Part shown: positions 4,649 through 49,000 of the stretch, piece after piece
Layout: each line of letters begins with the position of its first letter
Numbering within the stretch: the stretch's first letter is position 1
Source: Heteronotia binoei
Lineage: Eukaryota
Assembly: GCF_032191835.1 (NCBI RefSeq)
Contig: NC_083242.1
Span: forward strand, 38,688,001 to 38,752,000
Direction of reading: 5' to 3'
Length of the DNA stretch: 64,000 nt
Notes under the pieces: model-generated
Told to the model about the DNA's origin: nothing
What the model saw: only the letters and a program-made list of their open reading frames with translations
Databases searched by the model: none
Program-made: the position numbers and the translations under genes

Positions 4649-6940
4649 TAATAATAATAATTTTTAATTTCTATCCCGCCCTCCCCGCCGAGGCAGGCTC
4701 AGGGCGGCTCACAACATAAAATACACTGTACATCAAATTATACTTATAAAATCATGGTTAAAACAAATTACAGATTATTAAAATTAACATTAACAATGTG
4801 GCATTATAAACATTAGATCTTCAGTGGAATTCAGTACTAAAAGCATTTTCAGCAGCATTTCCTAGCTTATCATTAGTTGAAGGCTATCTTGAAAAGGTGG
4901 GTCTTACAGGCCCTACGGAATTGATCTAAGCATCGTAGGGCCCGCACCTCCTCAGGGAGTTGATTCCACAGCAGTGGAGCTGCGACAGAGAAGGCCCGAT
5001 CCCGGGTGGCCTTCAATCTGGCCTCCCTTGGCCCAGGGACATTCAGCTGGTTTTTTCCAGCTGACCTCAGCGCTCTCTGGGGCTCATATGGGGAGAGACG
5101 GTCCCTCAGGTAGGTAGGTCCCCTGCCATATAGGGCTTTAAAGGTGATAACCAGCACTTTGTAGCGAACTCGGTATGCCACTGGCAGCCAGTGCAGTCCG
5201 CATAGCCCCGGCTGTATGTGCTCCCACCTTGGGAGCCCCAACAACAGCCTAGCCGCCGCGTTCTGCACCAGCTGCAGCCGCCGAGTTCGGCACAAGGGCA
5301 GCCCCATGTAGAGGGCGTTGCAGTAGTCCAGTCTCGAGGTGACCGTAGCATGGATCACCATTGCTAGGTCACGGCGCTCCAGGAAGGGGGCCAACTGCTT
5401 CGCCCGTCGAAGGTGAAAGAACGCGGACTTGGCAGCGGCCGCTATCTGTGCCTCCATTGATAGTGAAGGCTCCAGAAGGACCCCCAAGCTCTTGACCTTA
5501 TGGGCTGCTTTCAGCAGCACACCGTCAAAGACCGGCAAGGGGATTTCCCTTCCCAGAGCACCGCGACCCAAGCAAAGGACCTCTGTCTTCGTTGGATTCA
5601 ACTTCAGCCCGCTCAGTCTGAGCCAACCTGCCACGGCTTGCAGTGCTAGGTCCAGGTTTTCTGGGACGGAGTCAGGTCGGCCGTCCATTAGTAGATAGAG
5701 CTGGGTGTCATCAGCATATTGATGGCACCCGAGCCCGAACCTCCGAGCAATCTGGGCAAGGGGGCGCATATAGATGTTAAACAGCATCGGGGAGAGAACT
5801 GCCCCTTGTGGCACCCCGCACACTAGTGGATGCCTCCGGGACCGCTCTCCCCCAATAGCCACCCTTTGTCCCCGTCCATCAAGGAAGGAGGAAAGCCACT
5901 GTAAGGCCAACCCCCTGATCCCTGCGTCGGTGAGCCGGCGGGCCAGTAGCTGATGATCGACCGTGTCAAATGCGGCCGACAGGTCCAACAGCATCAGCAC
6001 CGCCACGCCGCCTCGATCCAGATGCCGCTGGAGGTCATCTACCAAGGCGACCAGCACTGTCTCCGTCCCATGACTTGGACGAAAGCCGGACTGGTGGAAG
6101 TCTAAGGCGGAAGTGTCATCCAAAAAACTCTGCAACTGTGACGCCACTGCCCTCTCTATAACCTTACCTAAGAATGGTAGGTTCGAGACCGGTCGGTAGT
6201 TCGCCAATTCGGCCGGATCTGCTGTACTCTTTTTTAGGAGAGGGCGGACCGTGGCCTCTTTCAAAGATGTTGGGAATTGCCCTTCCAAGAGGGATCTATT
6301 TATGATATCCCGTACAGGATATCTAAGCTCCCTCTGGCAAGATTTAATTAGCCAGGAGGGGCATGGGTCAAGGTCGCAAGTTGTAGGGCATACAGTTGAG
6401 AGGATTTCGTCGACTTCCCCAAGACTAAGCACGTCGAAGTGATCCAAGATAATATCAGAAGACAGGCACAGAGCCCCAGGTTCTTGTACTGCATCCAATG
6501 TGGCAGGAAAGTCCTGGCAGAGTGATGAGATTTTATCTGCAAAAAATTTCGCAAAAGCCTCACAGCCTATTTCCAATTCTCTCATATTTGGTCTGCCTTG
6601 GGGCAGAGTGGTCAAATTCTCAATTATCTTAAATAATTGTACCGGGCGCGAATTTGCAGATGCAATCCTAGCCGCAAAGTAATCCTTCTTTGCGGCTTTG
6701 ACTGCCATCTCATAAGACTTCATAAACGTTCTATAGGATGTTCTCGTCGCTTCGTCACGAGTATGCCGCCACCGCCTCTCTAGTCGTCTGAGTCCCTGTT
6801 TCAGTTGGCGTAGCTCCGAGGTGTACCAAGGAGCCAGCCTACTTCGGGGGCGCAGAGGACGCCGGGGTGCAATCTCGTTGATGGCCCTGGATAGCCTGTC
6901 ATGCCAGGTATTTACCAGGTCATCAAGGGAATTTCTCCCT
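4649..6940 (-). mobile_element. L2-clade LINE, 5'-truncated, with an uninterrupted RT ORF (4873-6954 in the track)
   Basis: ORF carries NYRPVSNLPFLGKVIE, QSGFRPSHGTET, LDLSAAFDTVDH, GVPQGAVLSP and QYADDTQLY. The short (TTA)n-like 3' tail is at 4649-4665. No endonuclease domain is present. Confidence 0.9.
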
Positions 6941-7184
6941 TTCTCACAATACAAGAACTCGTGGGCATTCGATTAAATTGCTGAGCAGTCTGGTTAAAAT
7001 GGATAAAAGGAAGTACTTCTTCACCCAAAGGGTGATTAACATGTGGAATTCATTGCCACAGGAGGTGGTGGCGGCTACAAGCATAGCCAGCTTCAAGAGG
7101 GGATTGGACAAAAATATGGAACAGAGGTCCATCAGTAGCTATTGGCCACAGTATGTGTGTCTGTGTGTGTGTGTATATATATAC

Positions 7185-7215
<31 letters not shown>

Positions 7216-7310
7216 TTTTTTGGCCACTATGTGACACAGAGTGTTGGACTGGATGGGCCATTGGCCTGATCCAACATGGCTTCTCTTATGTTCTTATGTG
7301 TCACAGAGTG
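6934..7310 (+). mobile_element. CR1 LINE 3' end (continuation of the 4050 copy) with an embedded microsatellite and TTCTTATG tail
   Basis: Translates SHNTRTRGH..KRKYFFTQRVINMWNSLP; (GT)n/(TA)n/(TATG)n at about 7155-7216; ends in ggcttctcttatgttcttatg. Confidence 0.85.
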
Positions 7311-7320
7311 TTGGACTGGA

Positions 7321-8371
7321 TTTTTATTTATTTATTTGGGATTTGTATCCCGCCCTTCCCACAAGTGGCTCAGGGCGGCTTCCAACAACTAGTCAACATA
7401 AATTTAACAATTTTAAATATAAAACAATTAAATAATTAACATTTAAACATTAAAACCAGTAACATTTCACTCCATAAAACAATACAGCTTAAAACCAATA
7501 ACATGTCATTATATATAAACAGATGGCTGGCCAGTTACGTCAAGTTTTATCCCAGCTAGGTGTAGGCTAGCCGGAAGAGGGTCGTCTTACAGGCCCTGCG
7601 GAATTGAGCCAAGTCCTGCAGGGCCCTCACCTCTTCCGGCAGCTGATTCCACCAAGTGGGGGCCATAACGGAGAAAGCCCTTTCTCGGGTGACTTTCAAG
7701 CGGGCTTCTTTTGGCCCGGGGATAGAGAGGAGATTTTGTGTTCCTGACCTCAGTGCTCTCTGGGGAACATGTGGGGAGAGACGGTCCTTCAGGTAGGCAG
7801 GTCCCAGGCCATATAGGGCTTTAAAGGTAATAACCAGCACCTTGTACCGGACTCGGTACATCACTGGAAGCCAGTGCAGGGTCCGAAGACCCGGCCGAAT
7901 GTGTCCCCACTTTGGGAGACCCAATAGCAGCTGGGCCGCGGCATTCTGCACCAGCTGCAGTTTCCGAGTCCGGGACAGGGGCAGCCCCATGTAGAGGGCA
8001 TTGCAGTAGTCCAACCTCGAGGTGACCGTAGCATGGATCACTGTTGCTAGGTCGTCACGCTCCAGGAAGGGGGCCAGCTGCCTTGCCCGCCTAAGATGAA
8101 AAAATGCGGACTTGGCAGCGGCTGCTATCTGAGCCTCCATCTTTAAGGAAGGCTCCAACAGCACCCCCAAGCTCCTGACTCTGTCCGCCGCCATCAGCGG
8201 CGCACCGTCAAAAGCTGGCAGGGGGATCCCCCCTCCCGGGCCGCGGCGACCCAAGCAAAGGACCTCTGTCTTCGTTGGATTTAGCTTCAGCCCACTCAGT
8301 CTGAGCCACTCAGCCACGGCCCGTAATGCCCGGTCAAGATTTTCCAGGGCGCAGACCGGCTGGCCGTCCAT
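7321..8371 (-). mobile_element. Second L2-clade LINE fragment (RT C-terminus and 3' UTR), related subfamily
   Basis: The 271-aa ORF 7556-8371 closely parallels the C-terminus of the 4873-6954 ORF (KLNPTKTEVL..SRLDYCNALY..HWLPV). Tail (TTTA)n at about 7321-7337. Confidence 0.88.
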
Positions 8372-8376
8372 TAGTA

Positions 8377-8958
8377 GGATGGGCCACTGGCCTGATCCAA
8401 CAGGGCTTCTCTTATGTTCTTATGTGACACAGAGTGTTGGACTGGATGGGCCATTGGCCTGATCCAACAGGGCTTCTCTTATGTTCTTATGTGACACAGA
8501 GTGTTGGACTGAGGGGCCATTGGCCTGATTCAACATGGCTTCTCTTATGTTCTTAAGTGACACAGAGTGTTGGACTGGATGGGCCACTGGCCTGATCCAA
8601 CATGGCTTCTCTTATGTTCTTATGTGTCACAGAGTGTTGGACTGGATGGGCCATTGGCCTGATCCAACAGGGCTTCTCTTATGTTCTTATGTGACACAGA
8701 GTGTTGGACTGAGGGGCCATTGGCCTGATCCAACATGGCTTCTCTTATGTTCTTAAGTGACACAGAGTGTTGGACTGGATGGGCCACTGGCCTGATCCAG
8801 CAGGGCTTCTCTTATGTTCTTCTGTGACACAGAGTGTTGGACTGGATGGGCTATTGGCCTGATCCAACATGGCTTCTCTTATGTTCTTCTGTGACACAGA
8901 GTGTTGGACTGGATGGGCTATTGGCCTGATCCAACATGGCTTCTCTTATGTTCTTATG
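8377..8958 (+). repeat. Tandem array of about 9 x 67-bp units derived from the CR1 3' terminus
   Basis: Unit gtgacacagagtgttggactggatgggccattggcctgatccaacagggcttctcttatgttcttat, directly visible. Confidence 0.92.
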
Positions 8959-9600
8959 TAGACAAGCTGGAAGGGGTCCAGAGGAGGGCAACGAAGATGG
9001 TGAGGGGTCTGGAGACCAAGTCCTGTGAAGAAAGGTTGAAGGAGCTGGGTACGTTTAGCCTGGAGAGAAAGTTGCTGAGAGGTGGTAGCATCACCAAGTA
9101 CTTGAAGGGCTGCCATGTATAGGATGGTCCAGAGTTGTTTTCTATGGCTCCGGAAGGTAGGACCTTCTGGTTTGAAATTAAATCAAAAGAGTTTCCGGCT
9201 CAACATTAGGAAGAAGTTCCTGACCGTTAGAGCAGTTCCTCAGTGGAACAGGCTTCCTCCTTGGGAGGTGGTGGGCTCTCTTTCCTTGGAGGTTTTTAAG
9301 CAGAGGCTTGATGGCCATCTGACAGCAATGCTGATTCTGTGAATTAGGCAGATCATGGGAAGGAGGGCAGGAAGGGCTGCATCAGGGCTTAGTTCTTGTG
9401 GTCCTTTCTTACACACTCAGGAAAATGCTGATGGCTATTCTGGGGTCACGCAGCAATTTTCCTCCAGGCCAGTTTGGCCAGGGATCCTGGAAGGGTTGTT
9501 TTGCCATCTTCCTGTGCATGGAGCAGTGAATTTCCTGCATTGTGCCGGGGTTGTGGGGAGGGGGGGAGGTTTTGGACTAGATTGGGGGTCCCCAACCCCC
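8959..9600 (+). mobile_element. CR1 LINE 3' fragment of a second subfamily
   Basis: Translates [38 protein letters not shown], followed by 3' UTR. Confidence 0.8.
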
Positions 9601-9681
9601 CGTCTGTGGCCCAGTACCGGTCTGTGGTCTGTTAGCAACCAGGCTGTGAGTTGTATAATTATTTCATTATATATTACAATG

Positions 9682-9965
9682 TAGTAATAATAATAATAAT
9701 AATAATAATACATTGGATTTATATCCTACTTTCCACTCAATCTCAGAGTGGCTCACCATCTCCTTTATCTTCCTCCCCCACAGCAGAACCCCTTTGAGGT
9801 GGGCGGGGCTTAGAGAGCTCTCCCAGAAGCTGCCCTTTCAAGAACAACCTCTGCGAGAGCTATGGCTAACCCAAGGCCATTCCAGTAGGTGCATGTGGCG
9901 GAGTGGGATATCAAACCTGGTTCTCTCAAATAAAAGTCCACACACTTAACTGCCACACCACACTG
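9682..9965 (-). mobile_element. tRNA-derived SINE with L2-like 3' tail, next to a (TAA)n microsatellite
   Basis: Reverse strand reads gtgtggcagttaagtgtgtggactttt..ggtttgatatcccactcc (A-box and B-box-like). It matches the copy at 22135-22385. Confidence 0.7.
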
Positions 9966-10082
9966 GCTCTCCAGAACATTACTGTTCTGAGTAATAGAGT
10001 CCGCACAGGGAAGGGGCCCGGGGGGCAGAGGGGCTTCCCTGGCCACTGGGTGAGCAGGGCAAGGCTTGTGAACTCCGGGTTT

Positions 10083-37800: not shown

Positions 37801-40037
37801 GGGGCAGTCAGCTGGGGAGGCCTGGTGCTCATCAGGCTCTTTCCAGTGCCCCCCTGCCCTGCCCTGTCTCTGAGGGGTGGGTCTTGGCCCAGGGCTGAGC
37901 TGAGCTGAGCTCCTCTCTGCCACGGCAGCTGCTGGGGGAGACTGGGACACTCCCTCAGAAGGTTGGGTGGGTGCCTCTTCCTTCTTGGGCCAATACAGGC
38001 TGGCCCTGCTCTCCTGTGCGCAGACTGGAGCCCCAAGATGTTGTCGGCTGAGATGCAGAAGGGCTCGGGCAGGTGGTGGGGAGGGTGTTCTGAAGCATGG
38101 GGGGAGGGGGTATCATCCCTCGACATGTTGCCGCCGCCTCCTTTGTGTGCCTTTGGAAGGGGCTCTGCAGGTTTCCAGGTGTCTAGGGGTGCTGCAAGGG
38201 AGGGCTGCGTCGTGAGGGAACTGGAGCTGCCGGCTGCTGCCGCTGTGGTGCACTGGAGAGAGCGCCTGCCTGCCTGCCTGCTGTCCTCCTCCATCTTGCA
38301 GAGGTCCCATCCCATGACCCCTTCCTTGCCCCCCTGCTGCCACCTGAGCCGGACCCCGCTTTGTGTTTGCCTCCTAGGGTGAAGCCGCTGAAGAGGCCGG
38401 GTGGGGGCGGCTCCTCCTCCTCCTCCTCCTCCCAGCCTTCGGAGAACATCGTGGTGGCCTACTACTTCTGCGGGGAGCCCATTCCCTACCGCACCCTGGT
38501 CAAGGGGCGGGTGGTCACCCTGGGGCACTTCAAGGAGCTCCTCACCAAGAAAGGGAATTACCGGTAAGACCAGCGGCTGGGAGGGGCTGCGGCAAGGCTG
38601 CCCCTGGGGTGGGGTGGGAGCAGCCTTCTCTCTCTTGCCAGGGGTGTCTTGCCTATCAGCCCCCCCCCAGATTTTGAGGTGGGGGGACATCAAAGCGATC
38701 AAATGTGCTCGTAACTTTTGGCTTCCAGGGCAGGGTGAACTTCGTCTTTGCCAGCTGCTCTGCCCAGGCCGTTGCCCCTTTCTTGGGCAGCCTCGGGGCA
38801 GGGCTAGCTTGGCAGGGCTGCCCCAGGGAATTTATTTATTTTTATTTATTTATTTTAGGCCATTGATAGCCGCCGTCTCCCAAGAAGGGCTCAGGGCGGA
38901 TAACAACATTAGAAAGGCAATAGGAATAACAATCAAAATGTGGATAAAATAAAAGGCAATGCAATCATAGACAGTTTTTGATGGTGGCTCAGCTGGAACA
39001 TGTAAGCTGAGGAATCAGTTGGCACATGTTGTACGGACTACAAATCTGTCCTACATTCTAAGAATCAGATACAGCAAAGGCAGTTTAATATCGTGACGGG
39101 GGTGGTGCTACAGCATAGGGCCAGGCAGAATGCCTGGAGAATGCCCAATAGTGTAGGGTACCCGTTGCCTCAACTAAAGGCCTGGCGGAATAGCTCCATT
39201 TTGCAGGCCCTACGGAAAGGTAACAGTACAGTGAGGGCCTGGATCTCGAGGGGGAGCTGATTCCACCAGGCTGGAGCCAAGGCTGAAAAGGCCCTTCGGG
39301 GCAGGGGCAGTCAGCAGGGGGAGATGCCGTCCCCTAGATACACTTGTCCCAGGCTGTATAAGAGCCTTCAAGGTCTGGCTTTCTGGGGCCTCCTTGGGCA
39401 GGGTTAGGGGAGTCTCTTCGGGGAACATTTTTGGGAGGGGGTAGGGGAGGGGCATCAAGTGACCGCCCCCTTTGCCTGCATCGCTCTCCCCTCCCCAGGA
39501 GCCAGAATGTGTTCTCCCAAGTCTCAGTCCGGAGGGGGGTGGGGTCTCACTTGTTTTGCAGAGTATTCCATCTCTTGGTAGGCATGACTGGGCTGCTCGG
39601 AGCTCTTAGTGCTGAAGGCCATGACAGGAAGACTGCCTGCTTTTTGCTTTCTCTTCTCTCTCCTTTGAGGCTCTTTCAAGGGGGGGCGGGTCTGCCTCCT
39701 TGTCTTCGTAGCTCAGGATGGCCATCCCCCGTGCAAGCGTGCTGCCGCCGCCTTGGTCAGTCTGCTGAGGGCCTCCGTGTGTGGAGAGGCAGGGCGGGGG
39801 CTTGGAGCACAGAGCAGAGGCACTCCAGCTCCCTGGACTCCCATGGCTCTCAGTGGGCGCAGTCCTCCCCTTGCCCCTGACACCAGGGCTTTTCCATCTC
39901 TGCCTTGCAGGTATTACTTCAAGAAGGTGAGCGACGAGTTTGACTGCGGGGTGGTGTTTGAGGAGGTACGCGAGGAAGAGGCTGTCTTGCCCATCTTTGA
40001 AGAGAAGATCATTGGGAAGGTGGAGAAGATCGACTAG
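25881..40037 (+). CDS. AXIN1: Axin-1
   Basis: Exons 25881-26740, 30973-31113, 31621-31717, 32310-32447, 32953-33500, 35324-35503, 36122-36367, 37380-37487 (36-aa cassette exon), 38378-38563 and 39911-40037 splice in frame. Motifs: tankyrase site [11 protein letters not shown] domain, GSK3 site [14 protein letters not shown], beta-catenin site [17 protein letters not shown] domain ending GKVEKID*. Confidence 0.97.
27080..27365 (+). mobile_element. CR1 3' UTR fragment followed by a (GGAT/AGAT)n microsatellite
   Basis: Same terminal sequence as other CR1 copies (ggcttctcttatgttcttatg); microsatellite at about 27370-27435. Confidence 0.7.
29719..30795 (+). repeat. Five head-to-tail copies of a ~217-bp tRNA-derived SINE (Squam3-like)
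   Basis: Each unit has an A-box (tggctcagtgg), a B-box (ggttcaatcc) and the body cttgagaccctggagagcc..ctgattcagta. Family name is from recall. Confidence 0.85.
34260..35070 (+). mobile_element. Degenerate CR1 fragments in AXIN1 intron
   Basis: [31 protein letters not shown] in broken frames, followed by a CR1-type 3' UTR. Confidence 0.7.
38825..39365 (-). mobile_element. L2 3' fragment
   Basis: (TTTA)n tail plus gggctcagggcgg and ccctggatctcg..gctgattccacc, resembling the L2 ends at 4.7-5.0 and 7.3-7.7 kb. Confidence 0.6.
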
Positions 40038-42087
40038 CTCAGAGGAGAGAGGCAGGGCACAGCCCCCTCCTGGCCAGCACTTGCCACCCCTTGCCTGTGG
40101 GCCTCAGTCACGGAACAGCTCTCTCCAGCTGACCCCACGGCTCACGACAGCTGCCCCCAAAGGGTGCTCTGGATGGGGGAGGCACCTCACCCCCCCCGGC
40201 CTCCTTGGAGGGGGTGCCCAGGGGCTGGGGGGCGAGCACTTGGCAGCGGTCCCCCTTGGATGCTTTGCACTTGGAGCAGCCATTCCTTGTGGCCCAGGAG
40301 GAGGAAGGTGCCTGCCGGACTGGCTGAGCAGTGCTGGAAGGGGGCTGTGCCAGGGGGCTGCATCTAGCCCAAAGGTCCTGAGCAGAATGTGCTGCTCCCT
40401 GCCACCCCCCTCCCCTGGGGCCTCCCCCATTGGCCTGTCTGTACACAAAGCCAGTCCCCCCGCTGGTTCTCCTGACTGTCTCTCGAGGGCTGCCTGCCCC
40501 CTCCTGCCATCACCGAGTGCCTTGAACTCTGAGCTCCTCCTCTGGGGCAGGGAGAGCCCCCCTCCCCCCCCACAGCTGAGCTGCTCCTGGGGATGTGCCT
40601 GCCTTCCGCGTCGGATGGATTTCCAGCACGTGTTCCCCAGCAGTCACGGGTTTCTCGTTTTCTCTTTATTTTTTTGGAAGGGTTCAATGTAAATATGTAC
40701 ATTTTCTAAGCCAAGCGTCAGTGACCAGCAGCTGGGCTGGCAGCTGGTGACTCCAGGGCTGTTTTTTCACATGCCGACTTGTACAATGGTCTTTGGAAGG
40801 TACTTGGATGAGGAGGATGGAATAAACGATGCTGTTCAAACGGCTGCTGGCTCTCTCTCTCTCTCTCTCTCCTGGCCGGCCCCCAGCTCACCCCCTCCTC
40901 CAGACGCAGGGAAGGAACAGCTGGACCAGATCCAGCTCTCTCCCCCACCCCCTGCCAGGAAACATCTGTTCTGTCTCCCCTTGTGCAGGGCAGCTCGCGC
41001 AGTAAGAGCAGGGACTTCAGTCAGCATGCAGCGCCCAGATAGAAACCCTGCCAGGACATATGCGTAGCCACCAGATAGGCAGGCAGACAGCAGACGGATG
41101 GACGTGCTCTTTGTCAGTGGGTGAGCCCAGGACAGGCTGGTCTCCTCAGCCCTGGCGAGGCCTTGAGCGGGAGGCCTCCGAACAACCCCCAGGTTGTGTT
41201 GCAGAGGCAGGTCACTCTCCACTGGCAAGAGAGGCTGTAGGAAACTCCGGCCAACAAGGGCGCAAGTCAGCCTGCGACACACCATCTTTGCAGCTGGAGG
41301 CAGAGCGCCAGACAATCGGAGGAAAGGTTTTGGCCAGCCCGGGAGGACGATGCCTCCTTCAGGTGGGCTCTCCCTCCCTCCTCACTCCCCAGCCCACCGA
41401 GTTTGACCCTGCCAGCCACAAAGGGCAAAGGTCAGGCTGAGACCCAGCGCACTGCTCCTTGGTGAGGGGCCAGTCCACTCCCCCTTGCACCCCGGAAAGC
41501 ATCTGCCCTCCCAGAACACCTTGAGCGGGTGCACCCCTTGGGACATGGAAGGTGGGGCGGATGCTGGCCCTTCTGCACTGGGTCTCCCTGGAGGGAGCGG
41601 GAGGCAGGCTTGGAAGGTCTGGAGTGGAGAAGAGCCCCACCGAGCTCCTCCCCCACCTTGGATACGGAACCAGAACCTGAGCCGGTTCCACGGAGCCTTG
41701 GAGCTCTGGGCATTGTTTGAATTCCTCAACGGCCCGGCTGGCCTGCGGTGGGGAGGGCAGCAGGATGGGCTTGAGTGGTGAGGGGGGGAGCTGGAGGGGG
41801 CCCCCTTGGGGGGAGGGAGAGCAGGTGCTGCGCTCCAGCTGTGGCCCAGATGCCAGCAGCGCCCTCCGGGGTGGGGGGGCCTGGGAGTCAGCCTGATGTT
41901 CCCTCTCTTGTTCTCGAGCAGAAAGCAAGAGCGCCCCTCTTGAGAGCCAGGTAGGGGCCGTGGGTGGCTTGGGCAAAGGGGGGCAGCAGAGGGTGCTCCA
42001 GGGCCGGTCCTGGCCTCTGGCTGACAAGACCCCTGGGCAGCAGCAGGGGGGAGGCTGGAAGGACTCAGCTGGCTTTGTTGCCTGCAG

Positions 42088-45000
42088 GATGAGGCCAGCC
42101 CGCTGCACGCAGTGGCCAGGAGGGGGCACTATGAGGCCGCCTGTCGCATTCTCTCCCGGGGGACGGAGGCCATCGACAGCCAGGTGGGGGGGCCTTGGAG
42201 GGTGGTCTCCCCCACACTCTGGGTCAACTGGACCCTTCTCCCTCCAGCCCTCCGCAGCTGGCTGGTGCTGGCAGCTTCTCTCTCTGCCCTGCAGGACGCC
42301 AGTGGAAGGAGTCCCCTTTTCTGGGCCACCGAATACCGGCAGGAGAGGCTGGTGGAGCTGCTGCTGGCCCACGGGGCCAACCCAGCGGTGCGGGACAAGG
42401 TGAGGGAGTGGCCGGCTGCCCTCCCCCTGCCAGCAGCAGAGCTTGGCTAAGGGGGTGTGTGGCAGAGGCTGACCCCCTTCTCTGGCCCAGCAGTTCCAAG
42501 CCTGGGGCAACACAGTGAGGAGGGGTGGGGGTGACTGCCTGCCACCTGGGGCTGGCTGGGGGTGAGGCAAGCCCCAGTGGCCGAGCCTGTTGTGGGGCCC
42601 TGCCCCTCATGCACCCAGCCAGCTGCCTGTGGGGGTGGCTCATGGGTGAAGTTGGAGACCGGGCTGGAGCTCCAGTGCTGAGCCCTGGGCTTGGAGTCCC
42701 CCCAGAAAGGGAGGGGGCTCTTCTTTGCTCTGGAGCCAGGAGACCTCTGCCCTGCCCTGCCCCGCTTGGGCGGGGGGAGGAATGCAGGAGTTGCCTTGTC
42801 CCCAAAACAGCCCCCCCCCCCGGGTTTGAGCATTCTCCTCTGAGGTGGCATCACAACCGCCTGGTATTTCAGTGGCAAGAGACCCTCTACTTCGCAGAAG
42901 GTCTCTCTGCCCCCCCCTTTTGTGCCGCCCTGCCAGCGCTTCCCATTTGCCCTCCAGGAAGGGAACCTCTGTCTGCACCGGGCAGCCTTTGGGGGCTGTG
43001 CCGCCATTGCCCACATGTTGCTGGAGGCTGGCTCGGACCCAAACGCGCCAAACGACCAGGGAGACTCCCCTCTGCACCTGGCTGCCCGGGAGAGACACCA
43101 CGAATGCCTTGTGTGAGTGCCACCCCCGCTGTCTTGCTGGGTGGGCCTCGGGCGGAACCCCCTGGGCATCCTTGGGAAGCAGCGCTCCCCACGCCCACCC
43201 CAAGGAGGCCACAGGCTTCTGCTCTCGGAGCACGCCGCGTTGGCCTTGCAGCAGGCAGACCAGGAAAGCAAGACAGAACCCTGGGGCCAACCCAGGCAAG
43301 GGAAGCAACCCTGAGAAACCACAAGAAGGGACCGCCTGTTTCCCGGGTGATATTTCTCACACGGCTGCCGCTGGGCTTCCCTCACTCCTGGGGGGCCCAG
43401 CTCTGCCTCTGTGTCTTGCAGGCTGCTCCTTGCCTATGGGGCTGAGGCCTGCCTGCAGAACAAAGCGGGCCGGACACCCCTGCAGTGGAGTGCCCTTCAG
43501 AGCGCCTCCGCTTCCCCCGCCCTGAGCCAGGCGGAGAGAGTCCTCAGCAGGTGAGGGGGGGCTGGCCCTGCTGTGGGGTGGCCCAGGGGGCCTGCAGGGG
43601 CCCAGCCAAGCTTTGACTGCTCCCTCCCATCCCTCCCCAGAGACATTTCCCGGGGCTTTGAGCAAGTGCCCATTCCCTGCTTCAACGGGGTGGACGACGC
43701 CCCATGTCCCAGCGACTTCCTCTACGTCACGCAAAACATCGTGTCGGAGTCTGTGGCTATCTCCGTGGCAGCTGCTGGCCCAGGCAGGAGTCAGGTCAGA
43801 GCAGGGCTGGCCCCAGGGGGCCGCTGTGGGTGTCCGAGGGGGCTGGCGGGCAGCTTGCAGCTCTGCTCTGAGCCCCCCCCTGCAGCATCCGGCTCTGCAG
43901 CTCTTTCCTTCGCGGGCTTGCCAAGGAGGGGGGGAAGAGCGCCCATCCCTTCCAGCCCCCCACTGAGCGGAAGCAAGAGGCCTCAGCCCAGAGGGAGCCA
44001 AGCAGCCGGTACCCCAAAGGCTTGGAGTCCCATGGAAGAAAGGCAGCCTCGTGCTTTCTGGAGGGCTGGGGGATGTGCCGTGGTCCCCACTGCCCGCTGG
44101 GCGGGAGGTCCGGATGGGCTGGCGCGGTGAAGTGGTCCTCCTGGGGCTGCCCTGCAGCTGAACTGGGTGGGCTCTGTAGAGCTGAGTTGGCAACTGTTGA
44201 TCTGAGGAGACTTTGAGGGAGATCCTATTGTGGGAACCGGGTGGAACTGAGCCCACAGCCGCCCGTCTCTGGCTCTGCAGAATGCCAAGAGGCGGGGCTT
44301 GCAATGTGTGGAGGGGGTGGGGGGGAGTGGCAGACAGCCTCACTGTGGGCTAGAGGCCCCCTCCCTCTCAAAAGGTGACCCTCCGGCCTTTGCTTGCAGC
44401 ACTGCTCCTGCCCCCCCGGAGGCTGCTCCCCCGCCAGCTGCCCTTGTGTCTCGCGCGGCAGGCGGCCCTGGGACACAAGGAGGGTAAGAATGGCAGGCTG
44501 GGCATGGTGGCCGGGGGCTGGGGCACCAGGCAGGCTCTCCTCCCTTCCTCTTGTGTTCCAGGATGGCCAACTCCTCCGGCAGGGTGCCAGCAGCTCCTCC
44601 TCCTCCCCCTCGGAGATGGGCCTCCTCTTTGAATGCAACGTGCTCTGCTCGTGTGCCAGCTCCTGCTCCAACCGGGTGGTGCAGAGGGGCACCAGGTGAT
44701 GAGGGCAGCTTCTCCTGCTGCCTCCCTTCCTTGCAGGGGTCAGCCTAGCCCCTTGCCTGGGCTCCTCGCTTGCAGGCACCACCACGCCCCGCCCCCCAGC
44801 GGGCCGGCTCTGCAGAGCTGCCAAGAGGAGGGGGGACCCGCACCCCTTTGGACTCGATGCTTCCCAGGCTACAGTGTTCTCTCTTTGGGGCAGGGTTCAG
44901 CTGCAGCTCTTCCGGACGCCAGCCAAGGGCTGGGGCGTGCGCACTGCACAGGATGTCCCCCGTGGAGCCTTTCTGTGCCAGTGAGTTGGGGGTGGGGGGG

Positions 45001-45869
45001 AGGTCCTCTTTGGGGGCCCTTCGAGAGCACGAGGCCCAGCCAGCTCCCCCTCCCCTCTTTGCCAGGTACTTTGGGGAGCTGATTTCCAGCACAGAGGCCG
45101 CGGGGCGCAGCCTGGAGAATGCCTACTACTTCGCCCTGGTGAGACTGCTGCTGCCCCCCCCGCCCCCCGCCCAGCACAAGGGGTCTAGGCTCAGCCCCAC
45201 TGCTGCCATCGTGCCCCCTCTCTTGCAGGACGGCCAGGAGCGCTGCCTTGATGGGCGCTTCTATGGCAACATTGGCCGCTTCCTGAACCACTCCTGCCGG
45301 CCCAACCTGGAGGCTGTGCAGGTGTCAGCGGGGCCCGAGGGCCCTGGCATCGCCTTCTTCAGCACCCGGCCCATCCGCGCCGGAGAGGAGCTGGGGTGAG
45401 CGAGGGGCTCGGCTGGAAGCAGGGGGGGGGGGCGCAGTGCTGGGAAAGGGGCCCGGGGCGGGCCTGCCTTCGATGGAGGGCTCAACTCCTGGGCGGCCTG
45501 TGGGGAAAGTAGAGGCAGCCGGTCTGGGGGGTGGGAGGAGCCAGGTGGGCCGCCCCGCCCCCTCCGCTGCTCCAACCGGGCTTCTCCCCCCGCCCCCCCG
45601 CCCCTTGCAGGTTCGACTACGGGGACAAGTTCTGGGAAGTGAAGGCGGGCGAAGGCTGCCGCTGCCTGTGCGGGGCTCCCGCGTGCCGCTACCGCCAGGA
45701 GGCCGCTTGCCCGGCGGCGTCGGGGGCTGCTGCGGGCGACGTGGCGTCGGGGCCGGGCGTCGGGGCCGGGCGCCCCCCGCTGCGAGGCTTCGCGCTCAAG
45801 TCCAAGCGCAGGACCCCCCTGCAAGGCCCCGCGCGCTCCCGCCGAGCCCCGCCCCTCGCCGAGCAATAA
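42088..45869 (+). CDS. EHMT1/EHMT2 (GLP/G9a)-like histone-lysine N-methyltransferase: ankyrin repeats, pre-SET, SET, post-SET; 5' end uncertain
   Basis: Exons 42088-42183, 42295-42399, 42958-43112, 43422-43550, 43641-43794, 44400-44483, 44562-44695, 44894-44980, 45066-45138, 45229-45395 and 45611-45869 are all AG/GT with matching phases and sum to 1443 nt. Motifs: [100 protein letters not shown]. Confidence 0.9.
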
Positions 45870-46037
45870 AGTTGGTGCTTCCCACGAGCTGCCGCGCCGC
45901 TGGTTCTTGCAAGCTGGAGGGCGACCGCAGGGGGGGGGGAGGGGGAAGCCCCGCCCCTCGGCCGAAGCCCCGCCCCTCGGGAGTCGCTGCCCGGCCGGAG
46001 AAGAGGCGCGGAGCGGAGGCAGCCCGAGGCGAGCTCC

Positions 46038-49000
46038 ATGACGGTGCTGGGCGCGCTCCGCTCGGCCGGCGGCCCCCGGCTGCAGCTGCCCTGCCTGGCC
46101 AAGGTGGGGGGGGGCGGGGGGAGAGCGGGGGGAGGGGGCGGGGGGGGCGTCTGGCGGGGCCTGACCTTGTCTCCCCCCTGCCGGTGCTGGCGCTGGTGCA
46201 GCTGGAGCGCGCCGTGCTGGCCATGCAGGACCCGGACATGGGCGTCAAGCTGCGGCACCAGCGGCTCCTCATCAGCGCCATCCCGCACGCCATGACCGGT
46301 GAGCCCCGCCGCGGGACGGGGGGGGGGGGGAGGGGAGGGGGCCCCTCCCTCCCCCCCCCTTCTCACCGCCCGGGGGCGCCGCTGCTCTTCTCCCCGCAGG
46401 CAGCGACGTGGTGGAGTGGCTGGGCCAGAAGTACGGCGTGGCCGAGGAGGGTCAGTGGGGGGGGATGGGGGGCGGGAGGGGGGCTGCGGGCGGGGAGGGG
46501 CGGGTGTGGCAGGGGCTGCCTCTCTCTCTCTCTCTCTCCCTCCCTCTGGCTGCAGAGGCCTTGCACCTGGGCCAGCTGCTGGTGAAGCACGGCTACGTCT
46601 ACCCGCTGAAGGACCCCTGCAGCCTGGCCTTGCGGGCCGATGAGACGCCCTACAGGTTCCAGGTAGGCCTCGCCCCGCACACACTCGCTTAACGGAACAG
46701 CCACGCAGAATAAACGCCAGAGGTTGGAGAGCCGCAGCACATGAATGGCAGGTGTGGGAGGGAGCGAGTGGAAAGAAAGCAACTTTAAATGCCTTGGCTC
46801 CAAGCCAGTGGCTGTGACGCTTCAAGAACCACACAAGATGTGAGGAAGAGGCAGTTTGGCTGGCCCTGTGCCCCACTGGCCCTCTTTCCCCCCTCCAGAC
46901 GCCGTATTTCTGGATGAGCACCAAGTGGCCCCCCACGGAGCTGGACTATGGTGAGTGCTGTGCGGGGGGCGGGGAAGGAAAGCTCTCCATGCATCTCCTC
47001 AAGGACCAACTCTCCCCCCTTCCTGTCGCAGCAATCTACCTGGCGAAGAAGAATATCCGCAAGCAAGGGGACCTTCTGGACCACGAAAAGGCAAGCGGGT
47101 GGCCACCTCATCTCACCCCTCCCCCTCCCCGCGTGTGGGACCCTGGCTCAGTCTGCCTGCTGCTCTCCCCCCCCCCCCAGGAAGACTACAGCCAGCTGCA
47201 CAAGAGGATCAACCACGCGTGGGACTTTGTGGTCATGCAGGCCCGAGAGCAGCTGCGGTGAGCCCACCTGGGCGGCCAGCCAGGATTCAGGGCAGGTGCG
47301 GGGGGGGGGGAAGAGGCCCTGATGCTTCCTTCCTCCCCCCCCCCCCACCAGGGCAGCCAAGCAGCGCCGGAGAGGGGACCGCATTGTCATCGAGTACCAG
47401 GAGCAAGCCTACTGGCTGGTGAACAGACCTCTGGTAGGTGGGGGGGGGGCTTGCAATCCCCCCCCCCGCCCTGCTTTCCTCACTGCTGAGCCAGGCAGCG
47501 AACTCCCGAGATCCTTGGGCAGACTGGCCGGGGGGCAGGTGGGGTCCCTGCTCAGCTCTGTCGTGTTTCCCTGCAGCCGGGGTCGTCGGATGTGATGGAA
47601 CTGGGGCCGGAAGGAAGGACCCGACACGGTGCCAGGGTGAGCTGGGGAGGGGGCTGTGGAAGGCCTGATTCAGCCCTGGCTCCCCAGCTGCTGGGCTGTG
47701 TGTGCCCCTCCTGGGCTGCTGGCTGGCTGGAGACCACTCCGTGGTAGGACTAGTCCTCCCCTCCCCTTCCCTCCTCTCCCAGCCTTTTCTGTGCCCCTCC
47801 CTCCCTCCCTCCGCTGCTCCTGAAGAGCACAAGGCTGGCTTGGAGCTGGGCATTTCCTTCCTTCATTCTGCCAGCCCATGCCCCCCCCCCCTCTGGCTGG
47901 TGCCAAGGCTGGAAGTCCCAGCGCCCCTCTGGACTCAGCTTGCTTCCTCCTGCAGCTTCCCTGGCCACGCCTTCCCACTGACCCCTGGGCTCTCAATACA
48001 CCCCCCTGGCGGCTGGGGTGGGAGTCTTCTTCCTTGCCGGAGGGGGCGGGCCTTCAGGGGCTCTTTTGGCCTTTGCTCTCTTCCAGGCGAAGAATGCCGA
48101 CTATTACAAGCAGGAGGTGAGTGTGGGTGGGTGGGGCCACGTCTGGGCCAGTGGGGAGGGGGCAACTGCCGCCTGCTGTCTGGCCCAAGTGCCCCCCAGC
48201 CCCTTTCTCTTGGGTGCAGATCCGCATCTGTTGCGCAGCCATGGGCCGGACCCGGCTCAAGTCTTCCATCTGCTTGGAAGGGTGAGTAAGTCTCCTGGGG
48301 CAGGTTGGCTCCTCACCCGCATGGCCTGCAGCCTCCTCTCTGGCCCAGAGGCCAAAGGGTACCTTTCCCAGGCTGGCTGCATCTGCAAGGGCCCTGCGGG
48401 GAAGGGAAGCCAGGAAGGAGGCAGGCAGCCTCCTGGGTCTCTCTGCCACCCGGCCTTCCCCAGAGGAGGTGGGCTGTTCGGCAAGCAGACCCACCATCCC
48501 TTTGTGCCCTGCCTCTCGGAGGGCAAATGCCCCCTTCCCTGGCCTCTGCCCGTCTCTGCAGGTACATCAAGTTCAACGACCAGTACATGCCCCACGACCC
48601 CATCATGTCCGGCTGCCTGCCCAGCAACCCCTGGATCACAGACGACACCACCTACTGGGCCATGAATGCCGCCGCGTGAGTGGCAGGCTCGGGGGTCTCT
48701 TGCTGGGAGTGCAGACTCTTTGGGGGGAGGGGGCTCCTGCCTCATGGGCCTGACCCTTTCTCCCCTTGCCTGCCTGCAGGGTCTCTGTGCCCACCAAGCT
48801 GCGGGTCGAGCGCTGGAGTTTCAGCTTCCAAGAACTGCTGAATGACCGCCTGGGCCGGGCACAGCTCTTGGAGTTCCTCCAGAAAGAGTTCAGTGGTGAG
48901 TGGACCCTGCAGAGGCCGAGAGGAGCAGAGCTCCCCAAATGGGGGAGGGGAGAGGGAGCCAAGCTCAGTCCAGACCACTCCCTGCCTGTCCTTCCACCCC

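Follow-up and report, generated by a model that had tools for sequence, protein, structure and literature searches.

The 64,000-nucleotide (nt) stretch of Heteronotia binoei DNA analysed here (NC_083242.1, 38,688,001-38,752,000 of the forward strand) is referred to as the window, and all coordinates are positions within it. Between AXIN1 and an RGS11-type gene, the window contains a compact gene of the EHMT type, which encodes ankyrin repeats followed by pre-SET, SET and post-SET domains. G9a and GLP (EHMT2 and EHMT1) are the textbook histone methyltransferases that read their own product, histone H3 methylated at lysine 9 (H3K9me; H3K9me1/2 for the mono- and dimethylated forms), by means of a cage in the ankyrin domain. 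A preliminary description of the window, made from its sequence, reported that two of the three tryptophan residues of this cage are replaced by arginine and predicted a loss of reading. The gene, the cage residues and their distribution among related proteins are described below.

Gene structure and methyl-lysine cage

The gene consists of 13 exons and encodes a protein of 494 residues in an open frame, with AG/GT splice sites throughout. Eleven exons at 42088-45869 yield an open frame of 480 residues, and two further exons upstream complete the 494-residue protein. Pfam assigns the domains Ank, Pre-SET and SET to the exons, and ankyrin repeats are called on both exon 4 and exon 5. The repeat-4 exon begins at position 42295 and the repeat-5 exon ends at position 43112; AG/GT sites are present on both. 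The exons are as follows:

41765-41777, plus strand: exon 1, 13 nt, start codon in the context AGCAGGATGG; encodes MGLS plus 1 nt (ATG GGC TTG AGT G) and is followed by the donor GTGAGG
41922-41950, plus strand: exon 2, a 29-nt micro-exon encoding (E)SKSAPLESQ, with AG/GT sites; matches MGLSASKEAPRESQ of Gekko kuhli
42088-42183, plus strand: exon 3, ankyrin repeat, counterpart of GLP repeat 3
42295-42399, plus strand: exon 4, ankyrin repeat 4, carrying the cage residues R51, W56 and E59
42958-43112, plus strand: exon 5, cage position 3 (R89) within ankyrin repeat 5, and the start of repeat 6
43422-43550, plus strand: exon 6, remainder of repeat 6, followed by the capping repeat, which is the last one, and the linker
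43641-43794, plus strand: exon 7, start of pre-SET
44400-44483, plus strand: exon 8, the CxCx4Cx4CxC zinc-cluster cysteines of pre-SET
44562-44695, plus strand: exon 9, second cysteine group of pre-SET
44894-44980, plus strand: exon 10, N-terminal part of SET
45066-45138, plus strand: exon 11, SET-I substrate loop, de-acidified relative to canonical proteins
45229-45395, plus strand: exon 12, SET core including GEELG
45611-45869, plus strand: exon 13, FDYG, post-SET CxCx4C, basic tail motif (45777-45812) and stop codon TAA (45867-45869)

Exons 1 and 2, when joined to exon 3, give MGLSESKSAPLESQ followed by DEASPLH. In the region of micro-exon 2, the DNA is 80-87% identical to that of the Eublepharis and Gekko loci. 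The encoded protein is composed of just 14 N-terminal residues ahead of the first retained ankyrin repeat, about 4.5 ankyrin repeats (the equivalents of GLP repeats 3-7), a linker, the pre-SET/SET/post-SET module and a tail of about 55 residues. The stop codon lies within an AATAAA sequence (45865-45870). The guanine plus cytosine (GC) content is 0.63-0.70 around the gene and 0.67 for the locus. Compared with other geckos, the window protein lacks eight residues of the C-A-R-x-S-S-P-S type in the capping ankyrin repeat (at 43485-43486). Three SET-I residues are also missing, and a longer poly-Ser run precedes the second cysteine group of pre-SET.

According to PMC2794343, the published cage of GLP is formed by Trp839, Trp844, Trp877 and Glu847. 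In the current human EHMT1 numbering the same residues are W874, W879, W912 and E882 (PMC13626213). Exons 4 and 5 match the GLP ankyrin chain 3b7b_A, and also 3b95, collinearly over residues 107-142 and then 143-193. In sequence searches of the PDB, designed ankyrin repeat proteins (DARPins) and ankyrins outrank GLP by summing repeat matches; the cage was assigned from the collinear ranges, from MAFFT alignments to EHMT1 orthologues and from a fold search. The four positions in the window are separated by +5, +3 and +33, which is the spacing of Trp839, Trp844, Glu847 and Trp877. The window does not have the three Trp and one Glu that form the cage in the EHMT family. Its four residues are R51, W56, E59 and R89, and the motifs read SGR, FWATE and LHR, compared with the canonical GGW, xW(A/G)xE and LHW. 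Two alignments, with 32 and 26 canonical EHMT proteins ranging from vertebrates to echinoderms, molluscs and ticks, and an alignment of the compact squamate family to which the gene belongs give the following distribution:

42307-42309, plus strand: R51, codon AGG, cage position 1 (Trp839); invariant Trp in all canonical EHMTs, Arg in 19 of 19 aligned members of the compact family
42322-42324, plus strand: W56, codon TGG, cage position 2 (Trp844); invariant Trp in canonical EHMTs, Trp in all members of the compact family
42331-42333, plus strand: E59, codon GAA, cage Glu (Glu847); Glu in canonical EHMTs (Asp in one of 26), Glu in the compact family, with Lys in Paroedura
42979-42981, plus strand: R89, codon CGG, cage position 3 (Trp877); invariant Trp in canonical EHMTs, mostly Trp in the compact family, with Arg in the window, Pituophis, Ophiophagus and Sceloporus

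All three cage Trp are invariant in both canonical alignments, so the occurrence of two Arg in one cage is far beyond chance. The replacement of the first and third Trp, with the middle Trp and the Glu kept, was confirmed by the exon translation, by the match to 3b7b_A and by the alignments. The preliminary description also asked whether both Arg are conserved in orthologues. This is the case for position 1, with Arg in all 19 sequences, but not for position 3, at which Arg is limited to the window, the two snakes and Sceloporus. The codons at the two positions could be read in five loci:

Window: position 1 AGG, position 3 CGG
Eublepharis: position 1 AGG, position 3 TGG
Gekko: position 1 AGG, position 3 TGG
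Pituophis: position 1 AGA, position 3 AGG
Sceloporus: position 1 CGG, position 3 CGA

The Arg at position 1 is fixed through the synonymous codons AGG, AGA and CGG, which indicates that it is old and held by selection. Since the nearest relatives of H. binoei keep TGG at position 3, the Arg of this gecko is recent and arose independently of the snake and iguanian cases. The codons suggest that the Trp-to-Arg change at position 3 has at least two, probably three, independent origins. A divergence scan of about 430 positions found 33 sites that are at least 85% conserved in the canonical proteins and different in the compact family. Both groups are fixed at five of these 33 sites, among which the ankyrin region has a single radical change, W51R.

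The compact squamate family

When the SET stretch was searched without a profile against 1.84 billion representatives, the best full-length relative was a skink protein of 524 residues (50% identity). When this protein was used to search a database clustered at 90%, a family of proteins of 460-570 residues was obtained, exclusively from squamates. The automatic names of its members are 'EHMT1-like', in one case 'EHMT2-like' (Paroedura), or 'hypothetical'. The members are:

Geckos: Paroedura, Eublepharis, Gekko, Sphaerodactylus
Skinks and cordylids: Lerista, Tiliqua, Hemicordylus
Lacertids: Podarcis; amphisbaenian: Rhineura; also Varanus and Sceloporus
Snakes: Pituophis, Crotalus, Ophiophagus, Protobothrops, Ahaetulla

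A second search with the SET domain and tail only, which gave 1010 candidates and was not swamped by ankyrin proteins, again found the family in squamates alone; the next matches were mammalian EHMT1 fragments, ankyrin-less Colius proteins, SETMAR and SUV39H1. The window protein is closest to those of Paroedura (73% identity), Gekko kuhli (71%) and Eublepharis (70%). Its identity to the squamate 'EHMT1-like' relatives ranges from 50 to 73%, and to canonical EHMTs from 38 to 46%. The alignment of the spliced protein to EHMTs extends over its whole length.

A maximum-likelihood tree was calculated from 37 rows and 432 columns, omitting mis-annotated snake models, two Podarcis raffonei isoforms and short fragments. 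In this tree the compact family forms a single clade (support 100/100) on a long stem of 0.81 changes per site. The clade is nested on the EHMT1 side of the EHMT1/EHMT2 split (100/99), and the window sequence is placed among the geckos (96/99). Judged by these sequence relationships, the gene is a compact EHMT1-derived paralogue and neither EHMT1 nor EHMT2. The designation of the ankyrin domain as G9a/GLP-type in the preliminary description holds for the domain itself; the gene belongs, according to the searches and the tree, to a squamate paralogue derived from EHMT1. The paralogue probably dates to early squamates and has been kept across all squamate groups sampled. No paper on this squamate paralogue was found; the one reptile EHMT1 item that came up in the literature searches is a Y-linked gametologue in basilisks, and the family appears to be undescribed beyond its automatic 'EHMT1-like' names.

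Among the automatic gene models of the family, several run on into introns or leave exons out. The snake models have an MGLNGEAALG... start, the Pituophis and Sphaerodactylus models retain an intron, and the Gekko kuhli model skips the repeat-3 exon. The database lengths and N-termini of the compact family are therefore unreliable. Hemicordylus and Tiliqua each have two distinct compact copies on one contig, and the copies pair by species in the tree, which suggests separate tandem duplications or gene conversion. The 'EHMT1-like' proteins of the mousebird Colius striatus were considered as family members and rejected: they have no ankyrin repeats, are encoded at another locus with an olfactory receptor gene as neighbour, and branch separately on a long branch of the tree. 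Such ankyrin-less pre-SET/SET genes are numerous in this bird and spread over several contigs; two of them stand in tandem near the olfactory receptor gene (locus L003, 1-2393 and 10001-26310). Their long branch lies near EHMT1 and represents a separate expansion.

The ratio of nonsynonymous to synonymous substitution rates (dN/dS) was determined for the window gene against three orthologues:

Against Gekko: ankyrin domain 0.38, repeats 4-5 0.37, SET 0.30
Against Eublepharis: ankyrin domain 0.26, repeats 4-5 0.15, SET 0.25
Against Pituophis: ankyrin domain 0.20, repeats 4-5 0.10, SET 0.16

Every bootstrap interval lies below 1, and both the ankyrin and the SET parts are under purifying selection. 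The fold was assessed on the ankyrin domain of the Sceloporus orthologue, which stands in for the window protein and has the same R/W/E/R cage. Its AlphaFold2 model reaches a predicted local distance difference test score (pLDDT) of 91.4 and a predicted template modelling score (pTM) of 0.83. The four best PDB matches of the model are all EHMT1 (6BY9, 3B95 and two chains of 3B7B), at 1.1-1.3 A over about 160 columns and with 47-48% identity. The structure prediction against the GLP ankyrin domain that the preliminary description had proposed thus returned the GLP/EHMT1 fold in this orthologue. The net charge of three regions was compared among canonical proteins, the compact family and the window:

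Repeat-4 hairpin and helix: canonical -2.1, compact family +0.7, window 0
Whole ankyrin domain: canonical -8.3, compact family +0.7, window -4
SET-I substrate loop: canonical -6.8, compact family -3.5, window -2

These shifts imply that the reader groove and the substrate loop have both moved away from what suits the basic H3 tail. The acidic SET-I loop of the canonical enzymes would suit the basic ARKS segment of H3. At two SET-I positions where Asp is conserved in 88-92% of canonical proteins, the window has Ser and Ala. The changes in SET-I (45066-45138 and 45229-45395) are ISD to ISS, EAD to EAA and FDLD to FAL-D; the MHQDLRFPR loop further on has three residues fewer.

The SET and zinc-binding motifs are all kept: GWG, NHxC, ELGFDY, the nine Cys of pre-SET (CxCx4Cx4CxC and CxxxCxCxxxC) and the post-SET CLCGAPAC. 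From these intact motifs, the pre-SET/SET/post-SET module is apparently competent as a methyltransferase. The Tyr of the canonical LQLYRT segment is replaced by Phe (LQLFR, 44910-44912) in this gecko, Paroedura, Gekko and Sphaerodactylus, and by Cys in Eublepharis. This is presumably the position of G9a Tyr1067, which affects the number of methyl groups added.

The window protein starts with MGLSESK, a predicted motif that fits the N-myristoylation consensus G-{EDRKHPFYW}-x(2)-[STAGCN]-{P} (Gly2, Ser6, Lys7). A first exon of the form ATG-GGN-(L/A)-(S/N)-G followed by the phase-1 donor GT(G/A)AG, with A at -3 and G at +4, is present in five of five squamate loci (window, Eublepharis, Gekko kuhli, Pituophis and Sceloporus), and several database orthologues start with MGLSESK, MGLSGSR or MGLSASK. 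The MG(L/A/Q)xxS(K/R) start and the 13-nt first exon are kept in geckos, skinks, lacertids, an iguanian and a snake, whereas the next 10-40 residues vary freely. A myristoylated relative of EHMT would be unexpected for a chromatin enzyme. At the other end of the protein, the basic tail motif at 45777-45812 is specific to the family; almost every squamate orthologue has it, and canonical EHMT1 and EHMT2 do not. It is speculative whether this motif serves as a localisation signal or as a pseudosubstrate or automethylation site, its LKS resembling the RKS around H3K9.

The compact protein and EHMT1/GLP fall into the same clade of the tree and share the order of ankyrin repeats, pre-SET, SET and post-SET, with 44-46% identity over about 440 residues. 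The Sceloporus ankyrin model superposes on 3B95, 3B7B and 6BY9, and the SET motifs GWG, NHxC, ELGFDY and CxCx4C are common to both. Unlike EHMT1/GLP, the compact protein has no N-terminal half, including the Cys-rich region (PF21533 is absent in the family but present in canonical EHMT1 entries), and no first ankyrin repeats. It retains about 4.5 ankyrin repeats, compared with eight in EHMT1 (PMC13626213). The cage is R-W-E-(W/R) instead of the W-W-E-W of EHMT1, and the family is further distinguished by the de-acidified ankyrin and SET-I surfaces, the MGxxxS[K/R] start, the basic C-terminal tail and the AXIN1-RGS11 locus. EHMT2/G9a is alike in its domain order and in the family of its cage motif, but lies on the other side of the split (100/99).

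Predicted consequences for H3K9me reading

Replacement of the first Trp, the second Trp and the Glu of the cage in mouse GLP (W877A/W882A/E885A) or G9a (W791A/W796A/E799A) abolishes both the binding of methyl-H3K9 and the stimulation that pre-methylated nucleosomes bring about; mice with the GLP allele die after birth (PMC4335294). When both G9a/GLP partners carry cage mutations, the formation of H3K9me2 on nucleosomes is strongly reduced (PMC12871594). In human EHMT1, W912R weakens the binding of methylated H3K9 peptides with thermal stability kept, and it is the sole cage variant seen in Kleefstra patients (PMC13626213). R89 of the window is the same residue change as W912R, and the '3A' alleles of GLP and G9a include a mutation at position 1. 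These mutations are deleterious in an essential full-length enzyme, whereas in the compact paralogue the corresponding changes are fixed or recurrent natural states under purifying selection. Because the homologous mutants of GLP, G9a and human EHMT1 lose or weaken binding, the loss of canonical H3K9me1/2 reading, family-wide through position 1 and doubly in this gecko, is well supported by analogy. A guanidinium group lining a pocket for a methyl-ammonium group would also be electrostatically unfavourable. The preliminary description had predicted a loss of H3K9me read-write spreading. The mutants back the loss of canonical reading; the prediction has to be narrowed in that it concerns an additional paralogue and not the canonical G9a/GLP pair.

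We propose that the window gene is a compact EHMT1-derived paralogue with a disabled cage, the ankyrin domain of which has been kept for another role, and we consider this likely. The wall at position 1 (GLP Trp839) would have turned into Arg when the family arose and been maintained ever since. In this gecko the wall at position 3 (Trp877, human W912) would have changed to Arg in addition. With one or two of the three aromatic walls cationic and the groove no longer acidic, the binding of H3K9me1/2 would most likely be impossible, and the compact enzyme would lack the feedback by which G9a/GLP read their product. Selection may keep the ankyrin domain for a different role, for example to dock another partner or to support the SET domain as a scaffold. 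The reading favoured here is that the enzyme is active, as the intact motifs suggest, but has ceased to read H3K9me.

Some observations weigh against a disabled cage. Phe55 (LFW for the canonical (I/V/T)W), a new aromatic residue beside the cage Trp in every family member, might restore part of a wall. Near-invariance of the middle Trp and the cage Glu is unexpected for a wholly dead pocket, and R89 hinges on one assembly base (TGG versus CGG). The cage might then still read H3K9me1/2, with Phe55, Trp56, Glu59 and, in most species, the Trp at position 3 being sufficient and the Arg adding cation-pi interactions or hydrogen bonds. The superposition of the fold on GLP at about 1.2 A agrees with this. 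However, guanidinium repels a methyl-ammonium cation in the pocket, mutations of the cage residues in GLP and G9a abolish binding, W912R by itself weakens it in human EHMT1, and the groove is without the acidic residues that suit the basic H3 tail; continued reading is very unlikely. A sequencing or assembly error at R89, with TGG misread as CGG, would agree with the single base that differs from the closest geckos. Yet the same residue change, with other codons, is found in three other squamate assemblies and the surrounding exon is clean, which makes an error highly improbable. The idea that the gene is a decaying duplicate, a pseudogene or near-pseudogene in which the Arg changes are neutral wear, draws on the long stem and fast evolution of the family, on the identity of only about 73% between gecko genera and on the deletions of the window lineage in the last ankyrin repeat and SET-I. 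It is largely refuted by the open frame of 13 exons with canonical splice sites, by the intact orthologues that every major squamate group sampled has at this locus, by dN/dS values well below 1 in every domain and by the full set of catalytic and zinc-binding motifs, and hardly any weight is left to it.

The same replacements could have produced a new pocket in place of a lost one. An Arg/Trp/Glu pocket, with a second Arg in some species, on a de-acidified groove might bind an acidic, phosphorylated or lipid head-group ligand in place of a methyl-ammonium group. The preliminary description had raised a new acidic or phosphorylated ligand as a possibility, and the idea is plausible. The Arg at position 1 is found in 19 of 19 sequences despite the use of AGG, AGA and CGG. 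Two positions ahead of this Arg, the sequence changes freely (S, K, G, W, R, C, T, A, Y). All two to three independent replacements at position 3 are Arg, the snake AGG requiring a T-to-A transversion. The charge shift from -2.1 to +0.7 in repeat 4 and from -8.3 to +0.7 in the whole ankyrin domain, and the dN/dS of repeats 4-5, which is the lowest in the protein against Eublepharis (0.15) and Pituophis (0.10), point in the same direction. Through its conserved N-terminal motif of the myristoylation type, the protein would be located close to acidic membranes. On the other hand, the only non-stop transition of TGG is CGG and the locus is GC-rich (0.67), and mutation bias therefore also predicts a recurrent change of Trp to Arg. 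Position 3 is still Trp in most lineages, so that the pocket with two Arg is not the conserved state of the family, and the cage Glu is replaced by Lys in Paroedura. The change at position 3 could be the decay of an already disabled cage. A rewired pocket is conceivable on this evidence but doubtful. It is possible that both grooves have been retargeted. The broader proposal of a retargeted enzyme, N-myristoylated and membrane-associated, with both grooves neutral or basic, an Arg pocket for an acidic, phosphorylated or lipid ligand and a SET domain acting on a non-H3K9, possibly non-histone substrate, is rather unlikely.

The cages form a natural separation-of-function series: W-W-E-W in the canonical proteins, R-W-E-W in most family members and R-W-E-R in this gecko, snakes and Sceloporus. 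The recurrent Arg at position 3 is the same change as the human allele that causes Kleefstra syndrome. The series could be used to study roles of the ankyrin domain beyond H3K9me reading, and to find out whether evolution can turn an aromatic cage into a recognition pocket of another kind.

Genomic neighbourhood

The neighbours of the compact gene in the window are:

38400-40037, plus strand: last exons of AXIN1 (DIX domain), the upstream neighbour, with the stop codon at 40035-40037 and AATAAA near 40822
46408-46692, plus strand: DEP-domain exon (Pfam) of an RGS11-type gene, the downstream neighbour

In the Eublepharis and Gekko loci, the compact gene is also located between AXIN1 and the RGS11-type gene. 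The Pituophis and Sceloporus loci have the order AXIN1, PDIA2-like, compact gene, RGS11-type, FAM234A. The RGS11-type neighbour in these four squamate loci encodes DEP, DHEX, G-gamma and RGS domains. The PDIA2-like gene of the snake and Sceloporus loci, which encodes a thioredoxin-type protein, lies on the minus strand between AXIN1 and the compact gene. No PDIA2-like gene was called between AXIN1 and the compact gene in the two gecko loci, and the gene has possibly been lost or relocated in geckos. The intervals concerned are 40038-41764 in the window, 6528-10001 in locus L001, 6278-10001 in L002, 2714-8653 in L004 and 3973-9131 in L005. In the window, about 1.7 kb separates the AXIN1 stop codon from exon 1 of the compact gene.

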